From Takakia lepidozioides (lineage: Eukaryota > Plantae > Bryophyta), in contig CM060733.1 of the NCBI GenBank assembly GCA_030704615.1, positions 14,136,001-14,200,000 on the forward strand: a stretch of DNA of 64,000 nt, in the 5' to 3' direction. The notes under the pieces are model-generated. The model was not told the DNA's origin. It did no database searches and saw nothing but the letters and a program-made list of their open reading frames with translations. Position 1 is the first letter of the stretch, and each line of letters begins with the position of its first letter. Position numbers and translations under genes: made by a program. Shown here piece after piece: positions 14,330 to 61,500 of this stretch.

Positions 14330-15084
14330 CGCATGATGTTGGATCCACCAGACATTTTGAATTTGCTAAGAAACTCATCTAATAAAATCTTTATCACTGC
14401 TTGGTGCACGATGAGATCCATTTTGTAAGGACTTTGTCTCCTAACATGTAGTTCTGAACACCTTTATAATCGTCGTCGAAATGCTCTGGAGTGGTGTAGA
14501 AAATGAGTTGCGCCATTGTCCTTAATGGTATGGAAGTATCCATGGATTCGAAAACATGTTTTTCATGTTCATTCCGTCGTGTGTCTTTTTACCCGAAATG
14601 CCTCAATGAACTATTTTAGGCCTCTGTTTTTAATGCCATGGTTAGCGCCAGAAGCCATTTGGAAATACAAGTATGGACTGCTCAATGAGTCCAAGGTCAC
14701 TTGATTAACTGATGCAAGTTTGCAATAAATAGTCATGTTGTTTTTAACGCTTTTGCAAGCATCCTCTTTGCTACCAAACACCTCGATATCTGTTGATGCT
14801 GGAAGGTTTAGGTCAAATTGACGTCAGTCACTCTCCAACAACCTGCATGAGAAACAGCCCCTCTTGCTAATTATTGTATGGGTAAGATTTTCGAACCAAT
14901 AGCCGCACAGCTCGGCAGAATTTGCGTGTCCTAAAAACTCTATAATAGTATACGACATCAAACCGATAGCTGTCTTCAACGATAGACACATTGCAAATCG
15001 ACCTGTAATCTAGTTGGACGCAAAGCGTACATCTCGACGAGTATATTGACGCAGATTTGATTTTTGGGACTAAGTGTCATTTGC
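14330..15084 (-). pseudogene. Crinkler-like restriction-endonuclease-fold domain remnant (left copy)
   Basis: Mirror of 54450-55000 plus 59151-59400; contains the empty TTAA site (14522-14525) of piggyBac B. Confidence 0.55.
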
Positions 15085-15420: not shown

Positions 15421-15439
15421 TTAGTCTCAATTTTTTTTC

Positions 15440-19800: not shown

Positions 19801-19941
19801 GCAGCTGGTTTTGGAGAGTTTGCGAAATTCGCCGAGGTACATCCTTCTTTCTTGTGCTTGGGGAAGGTGGGCCATCTGCATTGATTCATCGTGAGGGCTT
19901 GCATTCATTTCCTGTGATCTCTGTCGGTCTCAGGGATTCGT

Positions 19942-20388
19942 ATGGCACCAAAGAGGAAGGACGCTCTTGTGCCTGAGCCACCGTCGCCCCCACCCGAGCT
20001 TGCAGCTGCCGCGAAGGTTATAAGGGAGTGGGCGCTTGAGGAGCAGCACTGCACTCCCGAGCAGTGCAAGGTAATATTGGGGTGTCTGTCTCCTGCCTTC
20101 CTCTGTAGTTTGCCTCCACCGCCGTTCGCCAATCGCTGGCCTCGCCACCCTCGTCCTCATAATTTTCGCTTTTTGTTTAGACGCCACGTGGCTCTAGTTC
20201 TTGGTTGGAGAGAGAGAAGAGAGGAAGGTGATAAGGAGGGGTTTAGTGACGCTGTGAATCCTGTTTTGAGATATGATGTCTGGCCCGATGCCGACAGTCA
20301 GGCGTCTGAAGGAGTTGGCTCGTGCAAAGAGGTCGGTTCCTGCAAGTGTGACAGCACCTCCCAAAGGTGTGGCGAGGAAAAAAAATAA
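19942..20388 (+). CDS. piggyBac A accessory ORF, 148 aa, unknown function
   Basis: ATG-initiated open frame, homologous to 58138-58521 (RWP..P.P.NFR.LFRRH.A..LGW..R.EEGD...FS..VN..LR..VWPD). Confidence 0.8.
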   Translation: MAPKRKDALVPEPPSPPPELAAAAKVIREWALEEQHCTPEQCKVILGCLSPAFLCSLPPPPFANRWPRHPRPHNFRFLFRRHVALVLGWRERREEGDKEGFSDAVNPVLRYDVWPDADSQASEGVGSCKEVGSCKCDSTSQRCGEEKK

Positions 20389-24783: not shown

Positions 24784-25425
24784 GTTGTGTCGCGAGTCTA
24801 TTCACAGTGGGTCCGCTGGCCCGTCAGTGCTCCGGATATTCCCCTTATCGCGTGCATAACAGTCAGTTTGGAGGCGGTCTGCTGGAAGTCCGTCTGTTGG
24901 GATAGCAGTCTGTTGCACTTGTGAATTTGTCAGTCTGCTATGTCGGAAGTCTGTTGCACTAAGTCTGTTTGACTTCTTATTTTCCCTCCGGTCAGTCTTT
25001 TGGCTTGTTCTCCTGCCGGTCTGGCGAAACGTCCGTCTGCTGGACAGTTCTCCTCTATGGATATCAGTCTGTTGGACTGTGCATGCATCAGTCTGTTGTG
25101 TCGCGAGTCTGTTCACAGTAGGTCCGCTGGCCCGTCAGTGCTCCGGATATTCCCCTTATCGCGTGCATAACAGTCAGTTTGGAGGCGGTCTGCTGGAAGT
25201 CCGTCTGTTGGGATATCAGTCTGTTGCACTTGTGAATTTGTCAGTTTGTTGTGTCGGAAGTCTGTTGCACTAAGTCTGTTTGACTTCTTATTTTCCCTCC
25301 GGTTAGTCTTTTGGCTTGTTCTCCCGCCAGTCTGGCGAAACGTCCGTCTGCTGGACAGTTCTCCTCTATGGATATCAGTCTGTTGGACTGTGCATGCATC
25401 AGTCTGTTGTGCCGCGAGTCTGTTC
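24784..25425. repeat. Tandem repeat, ~2 copies of 311 bp, rich in AGTCTG
   Basis: GTTGTG(T/C)CGCGAGTCT recurs at 24784, 25095 and 25406. Confidence 0.92.
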
Positions 25426-26030
25426 GCAATGGGTGTGTTCGACTTTCCTGTTCTCCCCTTACTCTCTTTTGTCTTCATTCCGCTGGCAGGGAAGTGCCTC
25501 CAATATGAAGCCGCTTCGCCTCAGCAAAGCGAATAGTCCGGTGGACTCTCGGTCCGGTGGGAAATGAGTCTGCTGCACTTGCGAGGAGCGTGGATGAATT
25601 TAGTACGATCCGTTCGTTCGGTGGACGTATTCAATGCGATGACGGCGGATAGTTGGCGCCTGTGAAATCGCGCCACGTTGGCAGTGCCATGCCCGCTTTC
25701 CCCCTTCTACTTCTACTTTCTCCATTATCTTTGCGCCTGTTTCTTCGCACAGTTTTGCACTGCTTTGTTTTCCTCTTTGCGTTTCCATCACCGTAACGAA
25801 AGACGACCGTTCTTCCCCAGGTGTGGAGAGTCGCGGTGAGCCGCGAAGCGTCGCAAACACGCTCGCCTTCGTAACAACTCGAAGTTCATCGGCTCGGTGA
25901 GGTTCTCACTTGCTGCGGTGTTTCCATTCCATTCTGTGTCCTCTTCTTGCTTAGGGTGAGTCTTTTCATAGGACTTCTATCTGTCGCTCTGTCGCTCATT
26001 GTCCTTGCACCTTCGTTTCATTCTGCAGCG

Positions 26031-29000
26031 ATGGAGGATGCTTGTGAAAAAGGTGGAGCGGACTGGTTGGATTTTGTGCACCAAACCAGACTGAAGAAGG
26101 AGCGAAGGTACTGGTACTCACCAGACGAGTTTGATCATAAAATAGTGGAAGCATTTGTAGACCTCCGCGCCCGGAAGCCCAAAAACTCGAATTGGCAGAA
26201 GGACAAGCTCTTCTGTCCCTTCTGTGAAGAGGTAATCAAGGACAAAATCCAACTAAATCGGCATTGTGTTGACACGGGTTGCAAGGAGACTGTTGCAATG
26301 ATTCCACGGGATTTCAAGCCTTGGCCGATACTGAAAGAAATGTCGATTGTCAAAGAGGCCACAATGCGCTTGCGCGGATCAGTGCTTGACCCCCGCACTT
26401 TGGAATTAGACGAAGTGCGCGCACGGTATGGCGTCCATTGTGGTGGCCCGTCAATGGAGGATTTGCAAGTGCAGGGAACGCTGGACGCTCCCAGAAAACG
26501 TAAACTGAGTGATGGGGCCCAAAAAAAGGAGAGGCAAAAAAAGGAGAAGGCTGCAAGGTCTGCTCGCGAGGCAAGGGCAAAATCCACGCAACAGACTGAA
26601 CCCCGTCCTGGGCGGCAGACCCACACCATCAGTACTGATACTGAAAGTGAATCTGCTCAGGGCCTGGAAGGGGTGACAAGTCCAGTGGACATTGACTTGC
26701 CTGACCAGACTCGGCAGCAGACTCACACAAATATCGCGACCCATGCCATCGGTTTAGGGTCAAAACCAAAAACTCAACAGAGCACTGAAGGGCCAGTCTG
26801 CCCTGGCACATTGCGCCTCGTTGACTTTGGGCTTTTCCCACCAGAGTGCCCACCAATTGGGGATCCAGACTTCTTCCGTTATTTCTACAGAGTTGCCCAG
26901 TCAGGTCTGCTACGCACATTAATCCGACAGGCGGAACAGAACTGGTTGAACAGCTTTGAAGATGAAGATGACGATGATGAAGTAGAGGAGGTAATGGTCA
27001 GTCTGACCGCCCAGTCTGTTCTCTGTGCTGTTTGAGTCCATCATCGGGGTCACGTTGCCTATTCAGTCTGGTCAGTCCCCTGCGTTCTCTCCTCAGTCCG
27101 CTGGCTCAGTCCGCTCGTCAGTTAGTCTGTTTTATATCGCTGCATTACTTACTGAGTCCGTTTGTCAGTCCGCTGGTCCAGTCCACTGGTATAGTCTACT
27201 AGTTGCCTCCACCCTACGTACGCACGTTACAGTCTGCTGGTCTGTGAGTCCAGTCCGCTGCATGAGGTGAATATAGAGTCCACGTCCATGTTCCTGACGT
27301 CGAAGTTCTCTGCCGTGTACCAGGATGAACGTGTTTCTATTCGTAGGGCCATTCAGGCTTGGCGGATACCTAGCAATGATGCTCCTTTACAAGCGACTGC
27401 AGTGCGTGCGGAAGTGGACCGCGTGCGAGAGTACATATTATTGAAGTATCCTGGGTCATCTGCTGCTATAGCGGCATTACATATTGAAGACGCGTCGGGG
27501 GGGAATGCGTCTGGGACAGCCGAGTCTGCCATCCAGCAGACTCCCATTCAGCAGGCCGTCATCCAGCAGACTCCCGTTCAGCAGCCTGTCATCCAGCAGA
27601 CTCCAAGAGAGCAGACTCCCAACGAGCAGCCTGTCATCCTGCAGACTCCTCTCCAGGAGCCCATCATGCAGCCCATGCCAATGGGAAGTCCTGTCATCCA
27701 ACAGACTGCGGACCAGCAGACTGACCAGCAGACTGCCTTTCTCTCACATAGCACGGCGCTTTTTGCAGTTTGGCGATCGCCATCACCGGTAATTCGCCCG
27801 GAGCTGAAGACCTCACACTTCCCCGGCTTAGGGTGGGAGAAATTAATCCCCATTTGGATTGGCATAATGAGCTCCACCGGATTGTTGCGGACCGCCGGTG
27901 GTCATTTGTACCCTTTCATTATTCCATGGAGTTTTCTATTGAGGAAGCCAACCATGTTCTAGAAGCCGCCTCTGCTGTTGCCATTGAAGCCACAAGCGAC
28001 CAAAATGCGCCGCCTCTACTTGTGCAGCTGATTCTCATGGATGACCCACGGCCTGAAGACCTCAGACATATGCCTATGGCACATCCAATTTGGGGTGCGA
28101 AGAAAGCACTTGTTCGGATTGACTGAGGAGGACTTTGAGCGCATGGCAGCTTCCTTCCTACAACACAGATGGATGCAATTTGGCAATTTCCGCTCATACA
28201 ACAAGTTGATGAAGGATCTGCATAGTTTGAGGATGGACTTACTCCATGGAACAGACCATTCACAGAAGTTTGTGGTGGATGACGCATTGCACTGGTTTGC
28301 ATTGGTGATGGAGCGAGCAGTATTCGACATTGTTTTGCAGAATCCCAATGTCTTCAAAGTCCTGTGGTGTGGGATCCCAACTGAAGACCGCATCGGCGCC
28401 ATTGCTCATCTCGATGGAGCATGCCTGTGCCGGCAAATCAAGGACATTGGCCTCGTCGGAAATCTCTTGGAAGGTAAAATGTTATGGGCAACTTTCGTGT
28501 TTCAGCTCAATTTCTTTTGCCAACTTTTTTACAAGTTCACATTTGCATAAACATGTGTTGCAGGGCGAGTTGATCTGGGAGACAAGCAAGTGCAGGCTGC
28601 TTTCGACTCTTTTGCCAGAGGTGCAAGGGACCTTGTCCTGGCTTTACAAGGAGTTCGGGAGACTGTCCAGCAGACTGGCCACAAGAATGTCCAGCAGAGA
28701 CTGCCCAAGTGCTGGAGACCGAGCATGTGCACCAGACCGTCCCGGGTAATAGGCCGGATCACTCCCAGCAGACTGCCCCGCACACACATACTCAGTATGT
28801 GCAAACAGTACTGAGCGGGCAGCGAACTTTGCAGACTTTGCAGCAGACCGGAGAACAGACCGGCCAACAGACTGCCCCTCAGCCGACTGTGCAGCAGACC
28901 AGCGAACATGGCCACCAGACTGCCCCTCAGCAAACTGTACAGCAGACCGACAAATCCAGCCAGCAGATTGCCCCTCAGCAGACCGTGCAGCAGACCGACG

Positions 29001-31758
29001 AATCCAGCCAGCAGATTGCCCCTCAGCAGACTGTGCAGCACACTGGCGAACCTACTCAGCAGATGGCCGAGCAGACTATCCAGGAGACTAACAGCCAGTC
29101 TGTTCCCTGGATTGTGCAACAGACTCGGATGCACTGGCCTCACCGGGACCCTGTGGACGAATTTCTGCTGAGTTCCCAACAACATGTTTTTGGATCTGCC
29201 AGTATGAGTGTTTTGACCGAGTCCACTTTTCCCCCAGGCACATTCACTGACGACGTCATCAGGTCACCGGTAAAGCATTCTTATCCAGCTCCCCGTGGCC
29301 TGCCTTCTATGACCTTCCAGGTTAGTCCGGTTTTCGTGCGCTCAGTGGCGAAAGCCATAGATGAGTCTTACGTGATGACCGAACTCAATCTGGGAACGCA
29401 AAACCGTATCATAGATCTTACAGAAGAGTCTGAGGAAGCAATTGCCGGTGGGTCTTCCATACATGTTCTTGATGTTTCCCAAGTCCATGGAGATCCGAAC
29501 ACCCAGCCGGCTGTCCACCAGACTGACCAGCACACTGAACAGTGGACACATGGAAGGACTGCCGAGCAACCTGTGGCGGGGCAGCATACTGTCTTCATTG
29601 ATGAGCAGACTGAACCGCAGACTAACCAGCAGACTGCACAGGTCACAGATGGAAGGACTGACCAGGATGGCTCGGAGCGGCAGACTGCACAGCTCAGCTC
29701 TGACTGCACAGTTCAGATTGCACGGCCTGACCAGCACACTGCACACTTCACAGAGGGAAGGACTGACGACCAACCTGCCACCGAGCACATTGCCCACATT
29801 GAGGAAGAGACTGAACCGCAGAGTTGCCAGCAGACTGCACAGTTCACAGACGAAGAGAACCGGCGGCCGAGCAGACTGCCCACATTGAGCAACAGACTGA
29901 ACATGCTGGCAGGCACACTGACAAGGAACCACATGCGGCGCAGACACCGTCTGGTATAGCGCTGGATTACATGGAGTCTGCTCCCTCACCCCTTGGGCAG
30001 GTTGTGCCATTTCCTCTTTCAGCACTGTTGTTTATGTTTTAGCACATTGTGAAATTGGACTAATTCGACATTTTGCTCGGTATCCTCACAGGATGTTCGT
30101 CCCTCCGTCGGCAGACTGTCTACTTCTGAGGACATGACATCTTCCGCCCATGCTGCAAACGTGGGATCGACAACCAAGAAAGGTGTGGGGGTGAGCACGC
30201 CCCCCGATGCGCGGGTCAGTTCTACGCATGCGACCCACGAAGCTGCAAAGACAGGTCCAGCAAGTGTAAACAAACCTGCTGACCAGCCTCTGTTGCGAAG
30301 TAGGGCGGCAGCGCTGCGTTTGTCTGCTCTATCCAGCCCGCCTACAGCTGTCCCTGCTTCCCAGGGGAGAGGCAAAGCCAAGAAGCGGACTGTCGTGGAC
30401 CATGCTGAGGAGGTCGAGGAGGGTCCGAGTACCAAGAGACCGGCGAAGAAAAAGTCTGGCGTCTTTATGAACAAGAACCGCAAGCTGGCCTTGGACATGG
30501 ACAAAGATGTGGGTCGTTTCCTGGAGTAGCACAGGTGAGTACTGTGCTCAGTCTCCTCGTCTGTCTTTGTCGTTAAGTGCTTTGCGCTCTGTTGTGGTCA
30601 GTCTGCACGCTGGTCAGTCTGCTGCTGGTTTCATCATTGTCTGTTGTGGTTAGTCTTGTCAGTCTGATGAATTGTTCAGCCTGTAGAGTGTTTGGTACCA
30701 TGTTGACGTCAGTCTGTTCAGTACATGAGGCTTCCCGAAGGATGGTCTGCTCTGTGCAGGATGGGTGCTCGGTTTGGCAAAGCACATGCTCTGCACGTGA
30801 AGGCAGGTAATTCCATGCTGATGTTTTTTGAAGGGGACCCACGGTTTGAATGCGGACTGTCGCCGGATGACATAAAGGCGGTCCAGAAGGTTGAGTCGGA
30901 GTGCACAGATAGACTCCTGGAGCTGTGGTGTCGATTCTATGAGAAGTCGGTTGAGGCTGCGTTCACCAACACTATTGCTGTTCTTCCAACGTCGACGTGG
31001 ACGGTGTTGAAGTCATTGGGGGTGGGGCAACATGAAAGCCTTCTGGAGGTCTTGAAAGGTTGCCTCAGCACTGAACGACTGGGCAAGGACTTGAAAGAGT
31101 GCGATTTCATTTTGGTGCCAATTGGGGACGAGTAAGAACTCTTCTGAGTCTGCTGAGACTGTCTCCTGAGTCATAGTCTGGTTTCGCAGTGTCGTCTTGA
31201 CTCTGAGCGATTAAGTTGACCTCTGTATTTGTGCAGTGGACTGGGTTTGAAGATTGAGTCTGCTGAGTGGTCGGTCTGCTGAGTCTGCCCATCATGATTG
31301 TGCAATGACGCCATGTTGTTTGATACCATTGCAGGGGGCACTGGAGTGTTTGTATCATCGACCTCCGCAAGGGCTGTTACACTCACCTGAACTCTATCAG
31401 GGACTTGCATAAATGTCCCTTTGTTCTAGGGTGGATTCGGAAGCTTCATGCGCAGTGCTTAGGGTACTCGATGGACTCACCAGAGTGGCATGAGATTGTC
31501 CAAGCATTTCAGTTCCACGCGCCTGATGTGCCCCAGCAACCATTCAGCTGGGAGTGTGGCTTTTACGTCATGTCATTCATTCAAGTGTTTTATGAGTGGG
31601 TAAAAGTCAGAGCAAATGTCTCCAAGACTGCAAAGCCAGAGAGAGGAACACCTTTCACGAAGGACTGGTTTACTTTCAAGTTTGCACTTGGGCAGCGAAT
31701 GCAGTGTGCCCAGTATATCATGCGGGGGTTGGACAATGTAGAGAAACTGCTCTCATGA
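26031..31758 (+). pseudogene. MULE accessory gene(s): N-terminal Cys/His finger, QQT-repeat region, C-terminal Ulp1/C48 SUMO-protease-like domain; multi-exon, frameshifted
   Basis: Exon 26031-26990 with CPFCEEVIKDKIQLNRHCVDTGC; canonical GT-AG junctions (26991/27323, 28474/28563); last exons give FILVPIGDE-GHWSVCIIDL..HLNSI..VPQQPFSWECGFYVM (His/Gln/Cys of C48, Asn at the usual Asp). May be one gene or two. Confidence 0.75.
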
Positions 31759-32304
31759 GTATGATGTACTTGTCATGTGAAGTCTATGTACCGAAATAAA
31801 AAATGCGAGTCTTTTCGCGTACTATTCCAGTGGTGATGAGCATTTTTGTGTACTGTGGGTGCTGGCATGTTTTGTAATGTTGTCACTAAACTCAATGGAC
31901 ACAATGGTGTCAATTTTTCCATGCACTGTGCACCCAAGTCTGCTGAGCTTGAATGTGCGAGCAGTACGCTGCGAGGCTAGGACTGCTGGGTCTGGTACCC
32001 AGTCTGGGAGGCACCATGTCCATGAGTCCGCTGGGACGCTGGATTGGCATAAGTTGCAGGGATGAGGTGGAAGTGTGGTGAGCAGACTTTTGGAGTGGGC
32101 AGCAGACTGACCAGCAGACTGGCTTACTGGCGCTCGCAGTCTGTTGACTGTGACTCTGTTGGGAGATTGTGCGTGAGTCCGTTGGGAGACTATGCTTGGG
32201 AGACTGTGTGGGAGTCAGTTGGGAGACTGGAGGAGTCCGTTGGGAGACTGTGCATTAGTCCATTGCGGACTTGTATTTCAGAAAGGGACAATGCTACCAG
32301 AAGA

Positions 32305-32555
32305 AATTGCAGACTTATATTGTCTTCTTCGTGACACCTACACGACATGTCACCTTGTCTCTTTTGAGGAATTGCAGACTTATATTGTCTTCTTCGTGAC
32401 ACCTACACGACATGAAACCTTGTCTCTTTTCGAGGAATTGCAGACTTATATTGTCTTCTCCGTGACACCTACACGACGTGAAACCTTGTCTGTTTTCGAG
32501 GCATTACAGACTTATATTGTCTTCTTCGTGACATCTACACGACCTGAAACCTTGC
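32305..32555. repeat. Tandem repeat, ~4 copies of 65-66 bp, between the converging MULE genes
   Basis: AATTGCAGACTTATATTGTCTTCTTCGTGACACCTACACGAC.. at 32305, 32370, 32436 and 32502. Confidence 0.92.
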
Positions 32556-35500
32556 AAATTTTCGAGTATATATGTGCTGCAGGTGCAGGTGCAGACACCC
32601 TCTTGCTGGTTCTCCGCAAAACCCTAGGCCGGGTTTTCCAGGTCTCCACGAAATCTCGTCTCCTTTTCAGAGACATGTTGTTGTTGTCGTTCAGAGGACG
32701 GAAAGCCTTCGCTGCCGCAGGGTGCAACATTCCAGCCGCACTTTTCGCCAGGATATCAACGAGCTGCCCTCTGCACATATGAAGAGCAGATCGGGCATGT
32801 GCCTCCAGGTATTTGTCATCACCTACAATGCGAAGTATGTCCGCGAATTCTTGTTCCAATGAGGCTAAGACCTGCAGAGGTGCCTCGTCGTAGGGGAAGT
32901 CGTCCGGAGGATGTCTTTCCATGAACTGATTGGATTCGTCGATGCCGCCGGCACCATTGCCCAAGAGCAAGTTAGGTAATCCTCCATGAATGGTTCCCAG
33001 CGCCGTGCCACAAGCGCGCACAAGGAGGCCATCCTGCAGGTCAGGGTGAAGCATCTTCAAGACATGGACCTGATGCTTGCATAAGTTTCCCTTCATTACC
33101 CATGGGCACGTGCAACAACCCCAATCGCAATCAGGATTGTAAACAATGTATATTGTGCCGGGGTGGTTGCTGCTGAGAACGTAGGCTGGTTCACCAGGAC
33201 CCAAGGGAAGAGTAACACTCTCAGCAGGAATGTCTCGTGCCGCAAGTATAGAACTGGATATGTACTTTTCGTGTTTGTCATTTCTTATGAACCCGTGGGT
33301 CTTCAAATGGATTGCGTACCAGTAGTGTGTTAGCACACGGCCAGTGAGTTCCCATATAAGCCAGTCCACTCTACGACCACTCATCTTGCCTTTCCCCATG
33401 GCAAGTCTTGCCTTCAGATTTCCATGGTATGCCTCAATGCTTGCATTTGTGTCTTGGCTCGCATGAGGGACATTGCGGGCTGCTGTACACCACATTGCTA
33501 TTTTGGGCTTCCAGTACTGTTCGATATAGTCAAGAAATTCATGTCCTTTCGGGTATTTTGACCTCATACGACGGATTCTCCTTGCAACCCACCGAAGCGC
33601 TCTTTTCTCGTTGCGTGGTCCCCCTCTACAGTGCATGAGGTCTCCCATATCCTTCAACAAGTTTACAGCGGTCACCGGATCTTTTGTTTTCTTGCATGAT
33701 TGCTTCACCCATGCCTTGCGGACATGCCAAAGGCAGAGGAAAATGAGTACTCCTTCAAAACAATTCTGCACAACACACATGGTACACATTAGAGTCTTGG
33801 GATCGGACTACAATGGTGGACTGCCGGAGTGGACTGTAACATCGACCTGTATCAGCGGGCAGAGCCACTGGACTCGCCCAGTGGACAGTACAATGCCATG
33901 ACGTTGATGTGCTGGAATAACCCCATTGGACTACCCAGTGGACTTCCCCATTGGACTTTCCCTAGCTAGGACTGGGGCAGCGGACTGCCCCAGGGACTAC
34001 TGAGTGGACTTGGCAGCGGACGGCCGACCCCAAGGACTGCTGAGTGGACTTGGCAGCGGACTTGGCAGCGGACTGCCGAGTGGACTTGCCGGGGACTGCC
34101 AGCGGACTTGCCAGGGGACTGATGACCGGACTTGACAGCGGACTACCAGTGGACTGCTGCAGTGGACTTCGATAATGGACCGGTGCTGTGGACCAATGGT
34201 AAGACCTTACCGAATAGCATTGATTTCTACTTCGGCATCGTCCACAATGAAGGCATTGGGTCGCCAGTTCGGCAAATCTGCGAGGAGTGAATCGCGCAAG
34301 GCTCTCATCCACGGAACCAGGTCTCTTGTCCGATTCCTCGCGGATAGGATATAGGCAACTGGTATACCATTCAACCACTCGTCGAAGACCATCAACGTGT
34401 ACAATGAGAACTGTTGGAATGCACAATGTAAGATGGTCAGAGCATGCAAATTCCGCTCAGTTCTGCACGAGAAGACTTCATAAGAGTGATGAGGTCTGTA
34501 GCGGTTCACAATGGGTCTGCCTCTCGGTCTTCCGCAACGTACACAACCCTAAACATACAAAAAGGGTCAGCACACCAAATATTATGTGAATGTTGCATGG
34601 TAATATGATATTATGCTCGTACAAGTCCATGGAATCGTTCGAATAGTACCTTGTCATGATTTGTCCCAAAGGTTGCATCACATGCAACGATACGGTCATG
34701 TCCTATGTCGCGCACCTCACTTCGGTAAGCTCCCCTTCAAGTCATAGTTACTCGCTTTGATGCGCGTGCCTAACTCCCAACCTGGCCGCCGGGCCAACTT
34801 GGAGCTTCGGCTGCTCACCAGGGCATAACGGTCCCCCTTTGATCTCCCAAAGAACCCTCCACCGATTTGGGCCCAGCGGGAATTCCTTTTGGTAGTTGGC
34901 AGTCCGGAACAGCTCCCCACTCTTTGGTCGCTTTCCGGCTCGCTTGCTTACTCACTAGTTTTTGGTCACCAACGGGCTTGCACCGTTCTCGGGGTCACTA
35001 CTCCCCTTATATATACTTCTGTAGCTGTCCGCGGGGGTTTCACAAACAACCATGCCATTTTATGGCGAACCACCACGAAAACCCTCGACTCCTGGTGATG
35101 AGTCGCGGTGAGTCTTGGCCCACCCACCACGGCCCCTATGGACCGTGATGAGTCCCAAGACTCCCCACGACTCCCACCACGAGGTCTCCGCCCCAAGGTG
35201 AGTCCTATGCCACCCCCACTAAGTCCCGGTGTGCGGGGTTCCACCTAGTGAGCACCTCCGCCTCCTTGAGTGCTTTGGGCACTCAAGGGTGCTTCAGCCC
35301 CCCGTACCTATCGCTACCACTGCCCCCACCACAGGGGCAGCCCCTCATGTGTCCCAACCCCCTGCCCTCAAGGCAAAGGGCCGCGACATCCTAGTTCTAG
35401 CATTCGTCGTTTCTGCCACGGAGTCTGTATGCCAATAGTGAATGTCAAATCTCCACCAAAATGCTCGAATGTTGGCTCTAATTTCTCCTCTTGATAGAAA

Positions 35501-36420
35501 AAAACGGACACAGGATTCTGGTCTCTCCACATGCGCACACTCTCTGCATCATCAGCGTGCTTTTTGAAGGTTTGCCACGTACGTTTCTCGGCAAGGTTGC
35601 GAACATCTTGCTCCAACAAGAAATCATTGCGGGTCCATGCATCGCCCAAGCCGGTGTTATTCATCACGTGCTCTTTATGCTCCATCATGATTTGGGCGAC
35701 CGACAGGCCTCGGCACAAACACTCGACGACCCAGGTTTTCAATTCCTCGCTAATGTGTGGTGCATAGGCGTGGCAGGTGTTCCTGAACTCTGCGGACTTC
35801 CTATGCGAGGGTTTCCCTTGCGCATCTGTATGCTCCATGTTGTTGTAGTACGTGAGGACACAGATGTCAAGGGCGAGATAGCATTGCTGGACCTTGAAAC
35901 AGCATTGGCAACCACGCTTGTAAGACTCTCCATACTCCGACTTCTTTCTCCTTGGGCCTTTATGAGGGCAAGATGTTCCAGCACCCACAAGAGGTCCTCC
36001 ACGCTTCTGTTTTGGATCCTCCACTATTGCCTTGTTGGTGCGCTTGTCATCAAGACCGTAGCAGCATTGATACCTGGACATAAAATTCTAAAATTGATAT
36101 CCAACGACTTGAGGAAGCATAAAATCAGAGAACTCGTGAAACAAAAAATGGCAACAGACATGCAATGAAACGTCAAAAGGACTGAGGATGGTGCACACAT
36201 AATACTGGACAGAAATGTGTTGGCTCTGGGTGCTTTTCGCGAGCCGGGTTCCACTTTAGAATGGACATTCACCCAAAACTGAGTGGGGTAGTCCTCCAAA
36301 CTCTCCTCTCCCAGGACGAAGTCACCAACTCTATCCCAAGGTATGCAGGCCTTTTTCAACATTCACTCGCACACCCATAAACCCATATTGCGTCTCACTC
36401 TTCCAATGGAGATCCTTCCT
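32512..36420 (-). pseudogene. MULE DDE transposase with SWIM finger (At4g13970/At1g60560-like family), spliced, disrupted by a solo LTR
   Basis: IPWDRVGDFVLGE; SYKRGCQCCF; FTIGIQTPWQ..LELG[LTR]HDRIVACDATFGTN; FIVDDA; CLWHVRKAW; TNASIEAYH; SWIM CTCPWVMKGNLCKH. Confidence 0.9.
34706..35388. mobile_element. Solo LTR, 683 bp
   Basis: TGTCGCG...CGCGACA termini; 5-bp TSD TCCTA at 34701-34705 and 35389-35393; removing it restores the transposase frame LELG-HDRIVACD. Confidence 0.92.
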
Positions 36421-37574
36421 GTTGAAGGGTCCTAGTTTTGCTGTTTACAAACATTGTCGAAGAGGCCGTATAAGCGGGCTTTCCGTGATTAGTATATCAT
36501 CGGGTTTTGCTTCCACGTCCATGCCCTATACAGTACAAAGGACACGCTTCTGAACATGCAAGAAACGCGCCGCAGTACAAGACACGATCGACAACGTGCC
36601 AGGAGAACAGTGTGCACGTTCGCGGCTGCTGGCAAGTGGCAGGCGGCAGGGATGCAGGTTTGAATTGCAGCCCTAAAAATGGAGGGCTCGGATGGGTTAT
36701 GGGAATGGACGGTGGCGATCCTGCGCTGTCATCGGACTGGATGGCAGGGGACTGGCCAGCGGACTGGCGGACAGACTGGCGGACTGGCAGACTACTGGGC
36801 AGCGGATTGGCCAGCAGCGGACTGGCGGACTGGCAGACTGCTGGGCAGCGGACTGGCAGACTGGAGGGCAGCGGACTCATGGGCGGGGGACTGGCCGCGC
36901 GGCGGACGGGGGCGCGGGCGCCGGTGATGTAGCCGCGCCCGCGGCTGGGCGACCACACTCAGCGGCGGGCGGGCGGGCGGGGTGCTGGGGAGCCGGGCGT
37001 CCGTGCGCGGGGCCCACCGGCCACATCGCACGTGCCCATTGAAGACCCTATTATCTTAAAATGAGAGGCACCAAAAACAGCCTCGTCCATTAGGTGTTAA
37101 AAGGCTCTGTCTTTTTTTCTAAAACAACAAAAAGAAGAAGAAGTGCTGTAACATTTAGTACATTGAATGTGTGAAGAAACAAAACTTGAAAGGAAGAAGG
37201 TAATATTAGAGCACATTTGCAAAAAAGAATTTCAAAAATCTTTTTTTTTCCCCTTCTTGGGCAGCTTAAAAAATGGTGATGATGATGTGGCAACAATGAC
37301 ATGGCAATGATGACGTGAAGATGATGATGTGGCATGATGATGCGTCACTATGGCACCCTATTCCTGCTCTACACTAGAACTAGGCTCCGACCTGTAGTCC
37401 TCATTAGAACGAGTCTCCAACAGTAAAATTAGTTATGGATGAGAAGTAGATGTTATTATTTAGAAAGGAGGAGCGTTACTCTTTCGATGCATGACAGCGG
37501 ATGAATACACGCTCAGCTTGGGTTGGATGGACGAAAAGAGAGTGAGGCTTTCCCACCTCATTCATCCATCCATG

Positions 37575-52300: not shown

Positions 52301-55300
52301 GTTGGCAACTTGACATGGATCGTCATTATTTTTGTTGCAAGCTCTTTCATATTCTTGCACATTGGGTCGCCTTCAAGAAAAATTGATTGTCCTCCTCACT
52401 ACAGCTAGCTATCTCCGATTGTGTTGTCGTCCTCTTCTTATGTTTGTTGAGCTTTTTGTTTGTAAGATGTTTAGAAGTTACTTGCCATTCAGACTGTCAT
52501 CGAGTTATTTCTTAAGAAAACTTGATTTTTTTCTCGTATGACGTATGGATGTGTGAAATGTGAAACTAAGCGCAATGAAGGAAGTCAAGTGGTTTAGTTA
52601 CAGATAGTGTAAATAGAAATGGAAGTTATGGAGTCGAGCGCAAATGAGACCAACCCTGTCCAACTACTTGAGATTGATAGTAGTTCTCATGTTGAAGCTA
52701 ACCCTCATAATGTTTCCTAGATCCAATGTATATCATCAAGCAATGGATTTAGTCAACAAGCACAAACGGATTGGCAACAAAACAACTTGTACTCTTGCAT
52801 AAGCAAGTATGTGGACTCCATATGGATGAAAATTGATGTCATGGACATTCTTCGCTACTCAAAACGACGAGCACATTGCTCTCGATTGAGCATAGGTTCT
52901 TTGATGTCTTTTGTGTTTTCTTGCCTATTATGGTCGTGAGGTTTTGACTAACAAGACTAAGGTAAGGAATTGCAATGAAAAAGTACACTGAAAAAGAGCA
53001 TGCAAAGATGATCAGTAGGTACACTTTTGAACTTGACACTATTTCACGCATAAACCCCGCATCTCATGAATTTAGTGATAGACAGTTGCACAAAAACGCA
53101 CTAAGGTTGCACCAGATATTATTTCTCAATTTCTCAAAAATCAAGTGTCTTACAAAAAACATAAACACCAAAAAACATTTCTCAAGGATTTAATATTGCT
53201 CATTGTCAAAAATACTGCCATCTGAGTACTATAACAAGCTTGTGGCTTATGAGGTTTGGAGTACTTGAGGCGGACACCTTTACATTGGTAATCATTTTTT
53301 TTACTACAAATTAGGAATTAAGACATATACATGTCGGATTATTCGAGGCCAATGACACCACCAGTGCAGGCCTAACCACTTCAACTTCGTGCACTCTTTG
53401 ACATGTTCGACCTCACAAAAAAAATTATTTGCTATGTGAAGGAATATGACATAAGTTTGGGAACCATGACTATTTGGGGTGAAAATGGTCATCGTATGTG
53501 AAGCACTAGCCGATTTTATTTTTTATTTTTATTTTATTTTTTCGTTGAAGGTGTTTGTTTTGGGCACGCACTAAGCAAAGCATATCAATATTCTACGAAT
53601 ATTAATGAAAAAATTGGAGAAGTATATTACATTTTTATACGCAGATATGATATAGTCTTTTTTCACGTGACACAAATTTAGTCTAACCCTATGAAAACTC
53701 GTTTTGCTTATAAAGTCATCATATTTCAGCAGGTACTGTTAGGTTATTTTATTGTGTTACAATTGTCAAACAGTCGCATTACAAAATCGTGATCCATTTT
53801 CTGAGATGTGGGTTGCGGCTGAAGTCATATCCTCCAGATTGTCGTACCAGTTGTTACAATATGTGTTTCCAATAAATGTAGTGCGTATTGGTTACTTAGC
53901 AACGCATTGGCTATGACCATCGGTTTATGAATATAATTTGAGAGTGAAAAGAAAGAATTTGAGATTAAAGTCGAAGTGGCACCCCACCTAGATCTGTCAA
54001 CCAAACTTGTTCTTTTAAGAGTTAGAATGCAAGAGCAAATTCTTCACATACAGATTATATATACATTTGCAAGCCCCTCAAAAACGTTTTTTAGGGACCA
54101 GAAGAAGTTCAAGGGAATTCTATATTTGTATATGTCACTGTTTGATGTGGAAGAGATGAAGGCTTGTTATAGGAATTCAATCGAAGCTTTCAGTGTAGTT
54201 GTTACCAAAACAGAAATGAAGGATTGGTTTTTCGCTGGCGGAAGAGTGCCCAGGACAGTCTTGAGATTGAGACCTGCCTATGGCTTTTACTTGGACTATT
54301 GGAAACAGTCTGCAGTGAACACCATGAATCAGTCGATGTCTACAGAAGAGATAAATATAGCTTGTGCAGCAATTGCATTTGATACGTTTGTTGGCGGGAG
54401 TGATGTTGTGTTTCACTGGCATGTGGATGAGACAAATGTGCCCAAGGAGCAAATGACACTTAGTCCCGAAAATCAAATCTGCGCAAATATACTCGTCGAG
54501 ATGTGCGCTTTGCGTCCGACTGGATCATAGGCCGATTTGCAATGCGTCTATCGTTGAAGAAAGCTATCGGTTTGATGTCGTATATTATTATAGAGTTTTT
54601 GGGACACACAGATTCTGCCGGGATGTGCGGCTATTAATTCAAAACTCTTACCAATACAATAATTAGCAATGGGGGTTGTTTCTCGTACAAGGTGTTGGAG
54701 AGTGACCGACGTCAATTTGATCGAAACCTTCCAGTAGCAACAGATATCGAGGTGTTTGGTAGCAAAGAGGATGTCTGCTAGAGCGATAAAAACAACATGA
54801 CTGTTTATTGTAAACATACATCAGCTAATGAAGTGACCTTGGACTCATTGAGCAGTCCATACTTCCAAATGGCTTGTGGCGCTAACCATGGCATTAAGAA
54901 AGAAGGCCTAAAGCAGTTCATTGAAGCATTTCGGTTAAAATGACACACGACGGAATGAATATGAAAACATAACTTCGAATCAATGGATACTTCCAAACCA
55001 TTAACCCTTAAGCGCCCAGTGCCCAATGTTGACTTTTTGAAAAAAAATGGACCCCAGCTCAGAAAAATGAGAATATCTCAGCGAAATTTTTTTTTTTGGG
55101 AAAATTGACCAAATATTATGCTCATACCTACCCCTTCCAGACACCCGTAAATTTGCAGGCCAATCAGGCGAAAATCCGAGAAACGCCACCGTTGAGTGTG
55201 GGGCCCATTTTTTGGGCCCCTCCCAAAACAATAAGGGAAATTGGAGGAATTTGCAATTTTCACTGATGGGATGAAATCTGCAGGATCTCATCCTGCTTAC

Positions 55301-55400
55301 AGGTGTTGTCCAGCACATTGGCATTCTGATGAGCCATAGAATGCAAAAAATGGATTCATATTTTCTGATTTACACCTGGTCAAAGTAAGGGGGGTCAAAA

Positions 55401-55586
55401 TGTGTGAGTGGGAATTGAACCCAGTGGCCTGCCCCAACTGGCAGCTCACACAAAGAAAGACCAACATGTGGCCAACACTAGCATCAAATCAGACTCAGAA
55501 AAACTAGAGATGAACCCACATTTACACGCCGAATTGTGTGAGTGGGAGTTGAACCCACTAACTTGCCCCAATTGGCAACTCACACA
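55401..55586 (-). repeat. Two 52-bp tRNA-like hairpin units in the piggyBac B 3' region
   Basis: 55401-55452 and 55535-55586; the minus strand reads TGTGTGAG..TGCCA(G/A)TTGG..TGGGTTCAA(T/C)TCCCACTCACACA. Confidence 0.75.
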
Positions 55587-56060
55587 TGAACACAAGGGGG
55601 GAGACTCCTCCCCAGGGAGGGAAGGAGTCTCCACCCTTATGCGCACCCCCGCTTGACTGGGGGACTACCACATAATTATACTAGACACAAAGAAAATGGA
55701 CTCAGTCCTAATTGAAACACAAAATTGTTGCAGCAAAGACCTCGGAGCTACATGAACACTAAGGCAAAAAGCTGGAGTAGCAAACAAATCATTCAGATCA
55801 GGACTCAGTGAACCCCAATACTGCACAACCTCTCCTTGGACTGTCAAGCGACTCTCTACGGCTGGATCCTCAGTACAAACGTTTCATGGCTACCAACAAC
55901 AAACCAACCCCCAAACACACCACTGCTTAGAAAAAGACAGAACACCACTACATAGAAAAAGTGTCGTAAGGAGGATACCCCCTCTTTGGCATCAAAGGTC
56001 TCCACATCAGTGCAGTAAGAAATCAACCATATCAATTACTGAACATAGAAGTATCTATAA

Positions 56061-58172
56061 TCAGAGAAGGCTATGGCTCTTGACAAAGCATCCTCCAAGG
56101 CACATATACACATCTCCACACGCGTGACAAAAATACCTTTGACGCATACCGCACTGAACACACTTCCTCCTCCTACTAGTCTTGAGGGAGAAATGCACAG
56201 ACCCCGGGTTGGGCACATCTGCCCCTGGCATTACTGTTCTCCTGGGAGGAACCCACCCCACAATTAGTCCCTTTGCAACCTCCAAATTGAAAAGCATGTG
56301 GCTAAGAGGAATGTGGCCCTTTCCCCTCATAAAACCCAGGTACAATATGTAAGCATTCACCAAAGAAGTGTCAACTCCATGAAAGTACAAGCGGTGCCAC
56401 CATTTATGGTCCCTGGTCTGAACAGAGTAGTAACCCCGTAGCTGATCCTGAACATCCACTCCCCGCATATGCTGATGGTAATGAACCACAATAGGGGAGG
56501 TAGGCACATCACGTCTTGCCCCTTTGTGCCATCTTTGTATGAAGCAATCAGGACTGACAGGGGAAATGGCAGTGGAAATCATGGTCACCAACTTGGCATC
56601 CATCCAGGCAATAGCGGCTACTTTGCCACTTATGTGAACACGATATTCCAGCCTACCTCTCTCACCCTTCTTCCCCAAATCAAGGCACGTAGGAAAACCC
56701 ACTCGGGAGGTTTTTACCGTGCCAGTAGCATAGATCTGTTTTGCTGCCAAATCATAGAACAGGATGGGGCTACTGAAAAAATTATCCATCGTTACAATAT
56801 GGCCCTTACCCTCAAATCCTTCTAGTAACCTTGTCACCACGCCATATCCACTGCCATGGGTCATATCATTCCCATCATCCTTCCCAAGGTAAACCTCTAA
56901 CTTCTGAACATATTTGGAACATGCACCACACAAACACCACACCTTCAGACCCCACTGCACAGGCTTCTTGCTCAGGTATTGCTGGATTCGGGCATATTTG
57001 CCCTTGTACTTCACCATTTGCTCATCCACAGTCAAATTCTGCTCGGGGCTCATGTAGGTGGCATACAAACCATTTAGTGCATGTAGCAACCACTTGGTTT
57101 TAGCTAACTTATCAAAAGCAGGGTCAGTGTCAATAGTGCATACATCCTTATTGTCAACAAGGTGGAGGCACCTCAGAATTGCCTCCCATCGGTTGCGGGA
57201 CATAATGCGCATGATGGAAGGACAATTGAAGAAGGCATTGTTGGCTTTCCAATACAATCTAGTACTAGGCAATTTTTTGATTCCCATGAGCATGTGAACA
57301 GCAAGCCAAGCCTTCAATTCACGGATGGTGATAGGGTACCACCATCTACCTCCTTTCAGGTTTCCATTCTGGTTTTCTGTCCTGGCATACAAGTTGGTCA
57401 TGCTACAAATTCGGCGCATGACCGATAGTGGCCAAAACAAATTGAAAAAATCAACTGGATTTGCTGAATCTCCAAAAGGCAAACGAGGACCCGAATCCCC
57501 ACCTAACCATGTAATGTCTGGCAATTCAGTAGCAGAGGAGTTCCACATGTCATCACCAAACAACTCAGCAGGACTCCACTGCTCCCAATTGGGCGGCAAA
57601 TCATATAATCCCACCTCACGCGTTGGATTCCCCGTGTCAACACAGTAGTCCATCAAGTCAGGATTGTCGATGTCAACAAGGTCATCATCTTCTGGATTAT
57701 AGTCACAATCAGAATCTGATTCACTATCATCTACTTCCCCCTCAGGCAATTCAGCTTCAGAATCCAACCCCAAGAGCTCAGGGATAGTGCACAACATTGA
57801 ATCATCAAGATTACACACAACACAGGATTGTGACGATACCACATGAACACCAAGGACACCAAAAAAAGAGACAGTATAATTTTTTGTACCATTCAGGATG
57901 TCCCATGTCTTGTCTACCACAGTGCCATATCCAAATTCGTGGGCATTGCTAGACGATGCCACATCCTGAAGGTGCAGCTCAGCCACTGCCACCTTCACTG
58001 TGGATCCCAAAATCCCTATGTCCTCCATAGTTTGGGAGTGACCAGCAGGATCACATAGCGGATTTTGAGAGTTGCACAAGGAGTAGGTCGAATTGCCCAT
58101 CTCCTCACTCATGAAATCAAAAGAGGGTTCAATACGATTACCTCTCTCCCTGGCCAGTTGTTTGAGCCTCAT
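56061..58172 (-). CDS. piggyBac transposase B, 703 aa, uninterrupted
   Basis: LTVDEQM, VTMDNFFSS and MRGVDVQDQL catalytic Asp motifs; KPVQWGLKVW; C-terminal CVQC..CHAC..C..C..H domain. Confidence 0.96.
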   Translation of the reverse strand: MRLKQLARERGNRIEPSFDFMSEEMGNSTYSLCNSQNPLCDPAGHSQTMEDIGILGSTVKVAVAELHLQDVASSSNAHEFGYGTVVDKTWDILNGTKNYTVSFFGVLGVHVVSSQSCVVCNLDDSMLCTIPELLGLDSEAELPEGEVDDSESDSDCDYNPEDDDLVDIDNPDLMDYCVDTGNPTREVGLYDLPPNWEQWSPAELFGDDMWNSSATELPDITWLGGDSGPRLPFGDSANPVDFFNLFWPLSVMRRICSMTNLYARTENQNGNLKGGRWWYPITIRELKAWLAVHMLMGIKKLPSTRLYWKANNAFFNCPSIMRIMSRNRWEAILRCLHLVDNKDVCTIDTDPAFDKLAKTKWLLHALNGLYATYMSPEQNLTVDEQMVKYKGKYARIQQYLSKKPVQWGLKVWCLCGACSKYVQKLEVYLGKDDGNDMTHGSGYGVVTRLLEGFEGKGHIVTMDNFFSSPILFYDLAAKQIYATGTVKTSRVGFPTCLDLGKKGERGRLEYRVHISGKVAAIAWMDAKLVTMISTAISPVSPDCFIQRWHKGARRDVPTSPIVVHYHQHMRGVDVQDQLRGYYSVQTRDHKWWHRLYFHGVDTSLVNAYILYLGFMRGKGHIPLSHMLFNLEVAKGLIVGWVPPRRTVMPGADVPNPGSVHFSLKTSRRRKCVQCGMRQRYFCHACGDVYMCLGGCFVKSHSLL

Positions 58173-58521
58173 CGTGGCTGGCAGAAGACGTCTGGAAGTC
58201 AGGCCAAACCTCGAGCCTCAAAATGTCGTTGACCTCTGCGCTGAACCTAAGAGGGTCTCCTTCCTCCTTGCGATCTACCCAACCCAAAATCTCTGCACAA
58301 TGGCGCCTAAACAAGTAACGAAAGTTGGAGGGCTGTGGAAATCCAGGCCAACGCACACGAGCAGGTCTCTTCAAACACAAGAGGTAGTCCTCATTCAGGA
58401 ACCCGACAATCCGCTCGACTTGCTCGGTTGATGCGCCCAGTGAGCGTGCCCACTTGGCAATCGATGCAGCTTGAGTCTCCAAATGCGCAGGTGCAGGGGG
58501 AGGCAACACACCCGAACCCAT
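58138..58521 (-). CDS. piggyBac B accessory ORF, 127 aa, unknown function
   Basis: Homolog of 19942-20388, in the same position and with the same overlap on the transposase start. Confidence 0.8.
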   Translation of the reverse strand: MGSGVLPPPAPAHLETQAASIAKWARSLGASTEQVERIVGFLNEDYLLCLKRPARVRWPGFPQPSNFRYLFRRHCAEILGWVDRKEEGDPLRFSAEVNDILRLEVWPDFQTSSASHDEAQTTGQGER

Positions 58522-61500
58522 CTTATACTATGTAGCTTCAACCTTCATCCACAAATTTGCATATGCACACAAGGATAAACACAAAGATGAGCTACACGAT
58601 GCCCTAACTGCGCATAGTCTAGCTCAGGTATCAAACAATGAACATTGCCTTGAATGCGCACCCTGAGTATCAATGCAAAGCCGGCCCATCCTCTCTCACA
58701 GCTATGGCTCAGTCTCTGTAGCGGTGCCACAATTTCCAAGTTTCCTCAACTGAAAGAGAAAGAGATAATGGAAGATGCAATCGGAGCAGACCACCAACGG
58801 CAACCTGTCAAGGCATCTGCAACGGCAACCTGCAACAAAGTATGGAACACGCGCGAACGCCACAACAGACGAGATCACAGCACAAGGCAAAACGCGGGAA
58901 GGAGAGAGACGACGCTGAAAACGCGGGAGCAAGCCAAAATCGCTGCAGAAGCAGACCCCACCTCCTGCGCAGCCAAAAATTGCAACCCTAACCAAAAAAA
59001 AAACCTAATCGCGCGTTGGAATCCTGACTGCCATGTGGCTGGCATCCTACCCTCCAAAAATCAGGTTAATCGGTTCAAATCTGAGAAAAACAGATGGGAA
59101 AAACCAAAACCAACGGCCGAAAACGGGTCGAATGGGCGCTTAAGGGTTAAAGACCGTGCCGCTACTTATTTTGTACACCATTCCAGAGCATTTCGACGAC
59201 GATTATAAAGGTGCTCAGAACTACATATTAAGAAAAAAAATCATACACCATTCTAGAGCATTTCGACGACGATTATAAAGGTGCTCAGAACTACATGTTA
59301 GGAAACAAAGTCCTTACAGAAAACGGATCTCATCGTGCACCAAACAGTGATGAAGATTTCATTAGATGAGTACCTTAGCAAATTCAAAAAGCCTAGTAGA
59401 TCCAACATCGTGCGCTATTGCAGTACAAATTTTGAGATCAAAGTCGACATGACATAGACAAATGATATGGTAAGATTTTTACCATAAACATACTTCTTTT
59501 TAAAATTCACTTCTTCATTCTCACATTATCTATGGGAAAATATTATAAGAATCACTTGGTGGTTTTGCAGTTGCTACTAAGCAACATTTCTGGTGCCAAC
59601 TTGGCTAGGAAACATGCGGCAATTGGGAAGCCTCCAAGGAAAAGAAAGAAAAATTGTGGAACTGGAGATTTTCAGAATGAAGCAGATACCACACAACCAC
59701 ATGAGAAAATAAGATTTGCACTAAAAACATACTTCTTTTTAACATCCAATTCTTCTCTATCAATAAATAGCTCATATGAGTTAACATGGCTAGTTATAAT
59801 ATTTTGATACAACGAAGATTTAGAAGATTAACGAATATTCAGTGTGGCATGTAAAATTGGGCATTGGTTGGCATTGGTTAGAAGACAAACCAATGCATTG
59901 GTTGGTTGATAGAGTTGTTTTAAACTTCAAACTTGATCTTAATCATTATAAACCAACTTCAACCACAGAAAATCAGACTTAATCAGATTTCAAAACTATT
60001 TATTGCTTCGGCATGAATGACCAATCTATTGTGCAATGCGGATGACACTTATACGACCTACAAAACTGCCCACCAATGATAAATATTTGTAACGGGGTTC
60101 GAGCATGTACTTATGGCTGATTTATCATGGTTGAGGTATATAATGAAATCTGATTGAAGCCTCATTTTTCATGATTGAAGAGTAATAGATCGATATATTG
60201 TCGGTATAGCGAGAGCTTGCATGGTTCTGACATATGCAATTGCCCATGGAAGCATGCGAGAAACCTTTAGAATGGTAGAGAACACATAATGTGCAATTCT
60301 CGACCATTGCATATTTAGTACAACAAATCCTAGGGATTATTGGTAGCCAGATCGAGACAAAGAGACTATTCTTGGTCATTTAAACTAAATTGCCAAAAAT
60401 AAAAATAAAAATGAAAGAAGACAAGTTTACAGTTAAGAGTGACAAGTCGAAGACTTTGTCTTGGGGTCACTGAATTTGAATCGTTTTGTGCTCGTTTGGT
60501 TGTCAAAAATTAGCCTGACGACACACGAATTGGTTGCAATGCATTTACTGATAATTTAGATGATGTCACCGAGGCAGAAGCTAATTTGCTTGATGAGTTC
60601 GATCAAGAAGAATTTGAAGATGAGATAGAAAAATTGGTGGATAGTTATTCGGATAACTTCGATATGAGAGCAAATTTATGCATATAGAGATTTCAATGCG
60701 GACTTTTCAAAGCTATTAGAATTTTTACTTCGTTAATCCACTTAAAATCATTTGCAGAAATATATATATATATATATACCTTACCTTTACCCTACCTAAA
60801 TTTATATTTATCCAATGGATATATCTGGATTACCCAAACCCGTTATTCTCAGTCTTAAGTTATATTTTGATAATACATGTTTATTATAAATAAATAAATA
60901 AAAGTGACGCGTTGCCGAAGCAAGCGGAACTTATGGTGTCACACCCATAGGGCTATTGTCTTCCGGTGGGAAGGTAGACACCGTAATGACTTCCAACAGG
61001 TGGATTGAACCCATAACCACTCGTGAGAGGGTATGTGCCATTACCACTCGGCTACATGCTGGTTGCATGTTGTATACACGTTTATTATACCCTAACTCTA
61101 TATTCATGCGAGCGTGTGAGCCCAAGCTCACGCCACGTCAGCGTGAGTCCACATACAACATTGTCAAATCAGCACGTACCCCTGTCACGTCACCTTCGGC
61201 CCATATAGCAAGTTACAAAAGAAATGATGCCTATACCCGATGGGCATATAACTGTGGGATTTATCCATTTCATTTTGGCAATTTTTGGCTAGTTTTTTTC
61301 AATAAAATCGAGACTGAAAGAATTGAATGAGATTGCACTACACATTTGATTACGGCTATGAATACGATTCTATATGTGTTACTGTGAAATAATTGTATCG
61401 TCTGGACACCGAAGATGTTTGTCTATTGCAACTTGTGTTGCTGCAACTCAATTGAGATACTTCACTTGGAATGTTGTACTTGAACACAGACAACCTCAAC

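Follow-up and report, generated by a model that had tools for sequence, protein, structure and literature searches.

A conserved open reading frame overlapping the transposase gene in piggyBac elements of the moss Takakia lepidozioides

The DNA transposon piggyBac is usually treated as a one-protein system and is a widely used gene-transfer tool. Canonical members (IFP2 and piggyBac-like elements) are bordered by a TTAA duplication and by terminal inverted repeats (TIRs) of 12-19 bp, and carry just one open reading frame (ORF) of 594 aa, with a DDD core and a C-terminal cysteine-rich domain. Two elements, A and B, were analysed here in a 64,000-nucleotide stretch of Takakia lepidozioides (contig CM060733.1, positions 14,136,001 to 14,200,000; hereafter the window). 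They resemble canonical piggyBac in all these traits except the number of ORFs: instead of a single one, they and their relatives have two overlapping ones, ORF1, coding for a small accessory protein, and ORF2, coding for a transposase of 650-1120 aa.

A second protein is not without precedent. KolX of the Kolobok elements has the fold of the P2X7 cytoplasmic ballast, and a few piggyBac families encode a protein resembling KolX's C-terminal portion, without most of its cysteines (Kojima and Bao 2022, PMC9587614). This record consists of one sentence and two non-plant sequences, those of piggyBac-2_GrCh and piggyBac-14_PI (Repbase names; second proteins in Data S6), whose gene order, strand and overlap are not described there (PMC9587614). 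In the literature searched, one paper names KolX and piggyBac together. Compared with these two entries, the plant ORF1 adds an N-terminal Trp helix, usually a six-residue insertion (EG..G) and hundreds of clusters, and its family has no cysteine cluster. The suffixes of the two names presumably point to a red alga and an oomycete. The Kol0 lineage of Kolobok is alike in its TTAA target and in combining a transposase with an accessory protein, KolX, whose ballast fold ORF1 probably shares. Its termini are, however, RR..YY and its transposase belongs to the C/DxxH group (PMC9587614), whereas the moss elements end in CCC..GGG/GTG, with CCC left ends in nine of them, and encode a PF13843 transposase, which sets them outside Kolobok; KolX also carries seven zinc cysteines and ORF1 none. 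The P2X7 ballast and Nanor probably share with ORF1 the helix arrangement of P2X7 residues 507-585, the positions of R546 and R578 and an F/W-P end, but are domesticated animal proteins with a dinuclear zinc site. Finally, MURB of MuDR, ORF1 of PIF/Harbinger and TnpA of CACTA are functional analogues, being element-encoded and transposase-binding (PMC12973397); no relation to the moss ORF1 in sequence or fold was found, and they derive from separate genes or splice forms rather than from a +1 overlap.

In plants, a 2017 survey reported no piggyBac (PMC5381638). Our literature search, with subscription journals and Repbase reports outside its scope, found no land-plant radiation, divergent ORF1 family or +1 overlap, and moss piggyBacs may be catalogued in either of those sources. 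An earlier, sequence-only reading of this locus had noted that canonical piggyBac has a single ORF; taken as a claim that no two-gene piggyBacs were known, this goes too far, since those with a KolX-like protein are already on record for a few families (PMC9587614). The land-plant radiation and the overlapping layout are new here, as is the conservation of two GDP (guanosine diphosphate)-binding arginines of P2X7, as mapped by eye. We put at roughly 55% the overall reading, in which the ORF1-bearing elements are autonomous-type piggyBacs of a land-plant (moss-associated) clade and encode two proteins, ORF1 being of the KolX / P2X7 ballast fold and the transposase being read from an AUG of its own in the +1 frame.

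Elements A and B and their relatives

Elements A and B are true TTAA piggyBacs (coordinates in Table 1): both have a TTAA duplication and short TIRs, of 14 bp in B and 15 bp in A, that start with a pyrimidine. The sequence-only reading had described them as two piggyBacs with different TIRs and strongly diverged DNA, each with an accessory ORF, of 127 aa in B and 148 aa in A, and the present analysis bears this out. At the DNA level the two elements share a single 54-bp match (74%), and their ORF1 products are 46% identical over 96 aa (E 2e-25). ORF1 had also been placed just 5' of the transposase; it does start upstream, but it overlaps the transposase start in the +1 frame, by 35 nt in B and 116 nt in A. 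The frame of ORF2-B is intact, matches PF13843 with an E value of 1e-77 in the Pfam search, and keeps the three Asp motifs (D383, D463 and the D574 region) as well as the C-terminal cysteine-rich domain. As for A, its ORF1 is indeed open despite the two stops in the transposase, as had been observed, but this is no sign of selection, the chance of it being about 0.63. The flanks of B form one arm of a large inverted duplication, the other arm of which has a single TTAA; this empty site is compatible with the pre-insertion state or with precise excision.

DNA was gathered for 11 distinct elements or loci bearing ORF1 (A, B and loci labelled L). A same-strand piggyBac transposase lies downstream of ORF1 in all eight elements with more than 1 kb of 3' DNA, one of which is from Ceratodon purpureus, and no unlinked homologue appeared among these eight. 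Likewise, a TTAA-CCC left end is found 577-958 nt before the ORF1 AUG in nine of the ten elements with 5' DNA. Together with the purifying selection and the separate transposase AUG reported below, this linkage supports a two-component piggyBac lineage with ORF1, which the sequence-only reading had proposed from A and B. Locus L020 was rejected as a carrier of ORF1, its match to the hidden Markov model (HMM) having an E value of 3.

In a transposase tree of 26 rows, for which stops within broken transposases were coded as X, the ORF1-bearing enzymes fall inside one clade (100/99), which includes L001 and a sister group. L001 has no ORF1 but is uninformative, since the end of a CACTA element abuts its 5' region. 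The sister group has one testable member, L008, with a full-length transposase frame and a different upstream ORF. Two loci speak against the general picture. The first is L028, the exception among the ten left ends, which has neither a TTAA-CCC end nor an open +1 frame. The second is L008: no ORF1 is detectable there beside a full-length transposase, so that the transposition chemistry may not need ORF1.

The ORF1 homologue of L028 (6001-6822) keeps its own frame through to an acidic stretch, terminating at a donor-like site 334 nt before the end of the contig; it is possibly a fused, spliced or domesticated form. In L008, which has a 3-kb leader, a 262-codon ORF (3818-4606) without Pfam match stands just before the transposase, in the same frame. 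The transposases of the ORF1 clade (L002 6001-9495, L029 938-4297, L023 and L024) have N-terminal extensions of 200-600 residues, which contain GR-rich stretches as well as one short segment that is conserved and beta-like (..F.VDFGG..), and no ORF1 domain was found in frame within the long N-termini of related transposases.

The ORF1 family and its probable fold

A full HMMER scan of 1.84 billion proteins, run with a two-sequence profile (ORF1-A and ORF1-B), returned 299 clusters at 50% identity; a word-index protein search with ORF1-B alone gave no match. The best 150 of the 299 clusters, most of which are intron-blind gene calls, range from 93 to 451 aa, and neither a transposase nor any other credible Pfam domain was found among them. 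The sole named member is a hypothetical protein of Ceratodon purpureus (209 aa, single-exon gene model), the remaining ones coming from metagenome and read assemblies, and no homologue was found in bacterial or viral contigs. The core of the family, about 105 residues long, has conserved Trp, Leu-Pro, Arg (95%), Leu-Gly-Trp, Arg (81%) and Pro columns, and the motif residues are invariant across 150 sequences at 30-45% identity. The AlphaFold model has five helices (predicted local distance difference test, pLDDT, 86), with the folded core of ORF1-B at about aa 8-109 and a non-conserved tail past the WPD motif. In the family, this tail is not under selection, and its length ranges from a few residues to about 300. 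ORF1-A starts with a basic stretch resembling a nuclear localization signal (NLS).

Between L023 and L024, the closest pair at the DNA level, the ORF1 core shows 0.164 nonsynonymous (dN) and 0.947 synonymous (dS) substitutions per site, that is a dN/dS of about 0.17 and not one near 1. Between A and B, for which dS is saturated, the proportion of nonsynonymous differences (pN) is 0.39 in the ORF1 core vs. 0.42 in the transposase core. By these codon measures, ORF1 is about as conserved as the transposase core and is a real protein family under purifying selection; a selected second ORF thus departs from the single-ORF organization of canonical piggyBac.

No named family was assigned to ORF1 by searches of Pfam, PDB sequences, the ESM Atlas (features and structure) or Foldseek. 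Two candidate relatives, the TRPC1 C-terminus (E 0.004) and hemerythrin (E 0.06), were rejected as helical-composition matches without the closing motif. The comparison with KolX was made on short forms of ORF1, the EG..G insertion being absent in about a sixth of the family. Set by eye against the published KolX alignment, these forms display its motif order: CL[DN]..L helix start, R...YR, LG, Pro, IR and a closing aromatic-Pro. The folded 74-residue C-terminal part of a short form (pLDDT 87) was then compared with 48,161 PDB representatives: rat P2X7 ranked second (Z 3.4, root-mean-square deviation 3.2), with 68 aligned residues, the most of any row, and with P2X7 residues 507-585, the region predicted. 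Since target and region had been named beforehand, this rank carries weight. The two arginines most conserved in ORF1 (95% and 81%) were placed by eye at R546 and R578; ballast domains of invertebrates keep no other GDP contacts (PMC7016195). H547, R574 and K583 of the same pocket are not conserved in ORF1, and nucleotide binding is therefore not implied. Regarding zinc, no conserved Cys column exceeds 55% in the family alignment, and the seven-Cys set is likewise absent from the piggyBac-borne KolX-like proteins (PMC9587614).

Several points count against the ballast assignment. A Z of 3.4 is at noise level and tied with unrelated chains, and the 74-residue model was trimmed after the ballast hypothesis had been formed; for the full-length ORF1-B model, P2X7 is outside the top 50, and neither it nor its Pfam family was picked up by Foldseek or by three HMM profiles. 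Taking the models and motifs together, ORF1 nonetheless probably belongs to the KolX / P2X7 cytoplasmic-ballast fold family, as a divergent member lacking zinc; the corresponding part of ORF1-B would be the last ~75 residues of its folded core. The link to KolX and P2X7, which had been advanced as a loose likeness, thus gains from the structural rank and the motif order, but not from the Z score or from any HMM match.

Two probable proteins from overlapping frames

The transposase sits in the +1 frame of ORF1 in every element (L028 having no open +1 frame). Counted in codons from the conserved Pro at the end of the ORF1 core, a +1 AUG lies between -4 and +10 in ten of ten elements, vs. one and none of ten for the other two frames over the same codons (background 0.28). 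Position -3 of this first +1 AUG is a purine in each of the nine loci listed; the ORF1 residues overlapping the AUG differ (Asp, His, Asn). Among 82 family proteins, dipeptides permitting a +1 AUG are enriched 3-fold, at 0.123 per position over the 12 residues that follow the Pro vs. 0.041 later. From the +1 AUG, ORF2 runs uninterrupted for 703, 1087 and 1119 codons in the three intact copies, and several ORF2 frames start with a related basic-helix motif. Over the ~25 codons past the ORF1 core, the L023/L024 pair gives a dN/dS of 0.275/1.40 = 0.20 in the +1 frame, vs. 0.67/0.36, above 1, in ORF1's own frame; as judged from these substitutions, selection switches from ORF1 to the +1 frame at the end of the ORF1 core. 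In A and B, 22-37 nt lie between the WPD motif of the core and the selected +1 motif, less than a plant intron needs, and a 752-nt contig (57862-58613), whose source run is guessed to be RNA, spans the junction with no gap.

Because of the conserved +1 AUG, the frame switch, the short spacing and the ungapped contig, two proteins are the better reading: ORF1 and the transposase are very probably separate products. That ORF1 might instead be a spliced first exon of the transposase, a possibility that the sequence-only reading had itself raised, is unlikely, although the RNA evidence is thin. On the debit side, the codon range for the +1 AUG was picked after inspection of the data and L017, L023, L024 and L025 are related; the run behind the contig, moreover, is only guessed to be RNA, has a depth of 3.8, consists of contigs only and may be of DNA origin.

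Depletion of AUGs between two starts is the usual signature of leaky scanning, as in viral overlapping genes. Out-of-frame AUGs within ORF1 number 16 vs. 25.9 expected from synonymous shuffles (p 0.01), whereas in the control transposase cores they are in excess (168 vs. 132 expected). Met makes up 0.6% of the ORF1 family core vs. 3% of the transposases, and in ORF1-A no AUG is present in any frame over the 327 nt before the transposase AUGs. A difficulty is that most loci show a purine at -3 of the ORF1 AUG, a fair context (that of A is weak), and leakiness is therefore not obvious. The depletion fits leaky scanning on one mRNA, a reading slightly more likely than not: most ribosomes would make ORF1 and a few would scan past its AUG to the transposase, leaving ORF1 in excess and transposase output low. 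Termination-reinitiation was put aside, as the ORF1 stop follows the second AUG at a distance that is not fixed, from 35 to over 350 nt.

The two proteins could alternatively come from two mRNAs, with an alternative 3' splice site or a start of transcription within ORF1 that removes the ORF1 AUG and gives a transposase-only message. We regard this as unlikely. The leader contains 8-21 AUGs, which means that an intron or a late start must precede ORF1, and acceptor-like AGs were seen by eye: in A, L002 and L016 they immediately precede the ORF1 AUG, and several loci have them ahead of the +1 AUG. There is, however, no acceptor at a conserved position: a universal one at the conserved Arg codon, the suspected site, was rejected, this codon being CGN in three loci. 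Two messages would also leave the AUG depletion along the whole of ORF1 unexplained, and the sole contig over the junction is unspliced.

If two proteins are made, ORF1 may be a cofactor of its own transposase, with its two conserved arginines binding phosphates (guanine nucleotide or DNA) during end-pairing or target capture. MURB, Harbinger ORF1 and CACTA TnpA bind their transposases (PMC12973397). A cofactor using the arginines placed by eye at R546 and R578 for phosphate binding is put forward tentatively, as the best guess at the function of ORF1. A bolder version, which we hold to be doubtful, is that the land-plant clade depends on a co-translated ballast-fold cofactor that would bind a guanine nucleotide or DNA by the arginines serving P2X7 for GDP, and would itself switch or boost the transposase. 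If true, it would provide a first function for KolX proteins, explain the role of the P2X7 ballast before its capture and offer a helper for piggyBac engineering in plants.

ORF1 could also act on the host, as an anti-silencing or chromatin-tethering factor comparable to the VANDAL accessory proteins. In favour of this, the clade is widespread among land plants, from which piggyBac had been reported missing (PMC5381638), accessory proteins with an anti-silencing role are known from plant TIR transposons (PMC12973397), and the start of ORF1-A is basic and NLS-like. Anti-silencing factors, however, tend to evolve fast, which does not suit a pN so close to that of the catalytic core, and the hosts in which KolX-like proteins accompany transposases (animals, a red alga and an oomycete) differ greatly in their silencing systems. 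This slow evolution and the occurrence in such different hosts favour a role at the transposase or the DNA over one against plant silencing, and a host-directed ORF1 appears quite improbable.

Slightly less probable still is a fusion of ORF1 in frame to the transposase, by splicing or frameshift and possibly as a minor form. The constant +1 offset and the unselected tail of such variable length would suit it, as would the donor-like GT sites overlapping the ORF1 stop in B and L028, and in L017 and L025 the ORF1 frame leads without a shift into sequence of the transposase N-terminus. But L017, which has stops and a deletion, is a decayed copy, and the frame of L025 ends ahead of any catalytic core. 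The 22-37 nt available in A and B are below plant intron size, no slippery sequence is shared, and in intact copies the +1 frame is open from a conserved AUG to the end of the transposase. No fused protein was seen among the best 150 of the 299 clusters, although intron-blind calls make up most of these. Lastly, the idea that ORF1 is a mere regulatory upstream ORF damping transposase translation, with a functionless peptide, has next to no likelihood: the overlap geometry and AUG depletion are those expected of a translational attenuator, but not the dN/dS of about 0.17, the invariant motif residues in 150 sequences or the confident fold (pLDDT 86).

The clade, with at least 299 clusters of the accessory protein, occurs in moss-type genomes and keeps one fixed layout of two overlapping genes. 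Simple piggyBac excision and integration assays, along with the intact-looking element B, make the function of a ballast-fold transposon protein directly testable, and thereby open the ancestral role of the P2X7 tail to test. The probable association of one accessory fold with two unrelated TTAA-targeting transposase families hints at handling of the TTAA target or at horizontal gene exchange.

Coordinates and other features of the window

Table 1. Position of the features of elements A and B in the window
Feature	Position	Strand	Description
piggyBac element B	55005..59146	-	4142 bp, structurally intact
TTAA duplications flanking B	55001-55004 and 59147-59150		
5' TIR of B	59133..59146	-	14 bp, begins CCC
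3' TIR of B	55005..55018	-	14 bp, perfect match to 5' TIR
Empty TTAA site	14522..14525		Inverted paralogue of the flanks of B
ORF1-B	58138..58521	-	127-aa accessory protein
ORF2-B	56061..58172	-	703-aa transposase, +1 frame of ORF1, AUG at 58172 within ORF1 tail
B 3' non-coding region	55530..55645	-	Long hairpin (55590-55643) and first tRNA-like fold (55530-55590) with T-loop motif
Second tRNA-like fold in B 3' region	55398..55456	-	T-loop motif
piggyBac element A	19005..37096	+	~4650 bp without nested element
TTAA duplications flanking A	19001-19004 and 37097-37100		
TIRs of A	19005-19019 and 37082-37096		15 bp, one mismatch, different from TIR of B
ORF1-A	19942..20388	+	148-aa accessory protein
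ORF2-A	20273..22225	+	Transposase, +1 frame of ORF1, TAG stops at 20624-20626 and 21677-21679
tRNA-like fold in A	22738-22790	+	T-loop motif
Mutator-like element nested in A	23637..37069		13.4 kb, outside the two-gene unit

The right end of A was found beyond the nested Mutator-like element, which sits 18 bp from that end, its insertion being 3 bp inside the right TIR. This nested element has TIRs of ~400 bp, a 9-bp target duplication and weak Pfam matches to SWIM and Ulp1-protease domains.

Past the transposase stop, at a distance of 500-650 nt, tRNA-like folds without anticodon arm are present in A (one) and in B (two); in B, a hairpin of high stability (z -9) comes before them. The folds are reminiscent of mascRNA-type 3' processing signals; ARAGORN made no call on them, no Rfam family reached its gathering score, and the motif was not recovered from seven related loci of other samples.

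The arms of the large inverted duplication (12004-18494 vs. 51328-63632) are 70-92% identical and differ by the insertion of element B; they include degenerate tandem repeats of ~80 bp at 13100-13760 and 61586-62566. A second inverted repeat, of 2.3 kb (42378-44617 vs. 45094-47371), is 79% identical, with a 480-bp spacer. An exon of the intron-containing gene for ribosomal protein eS26 is located at 37946-38040, about 850 bp from the right end of A. Decayed Ty3/gypsy-like remains, with integrase, RNase H and protease fragments recognized by inspection, occupy positions 3836-7098 and 9306-10644.

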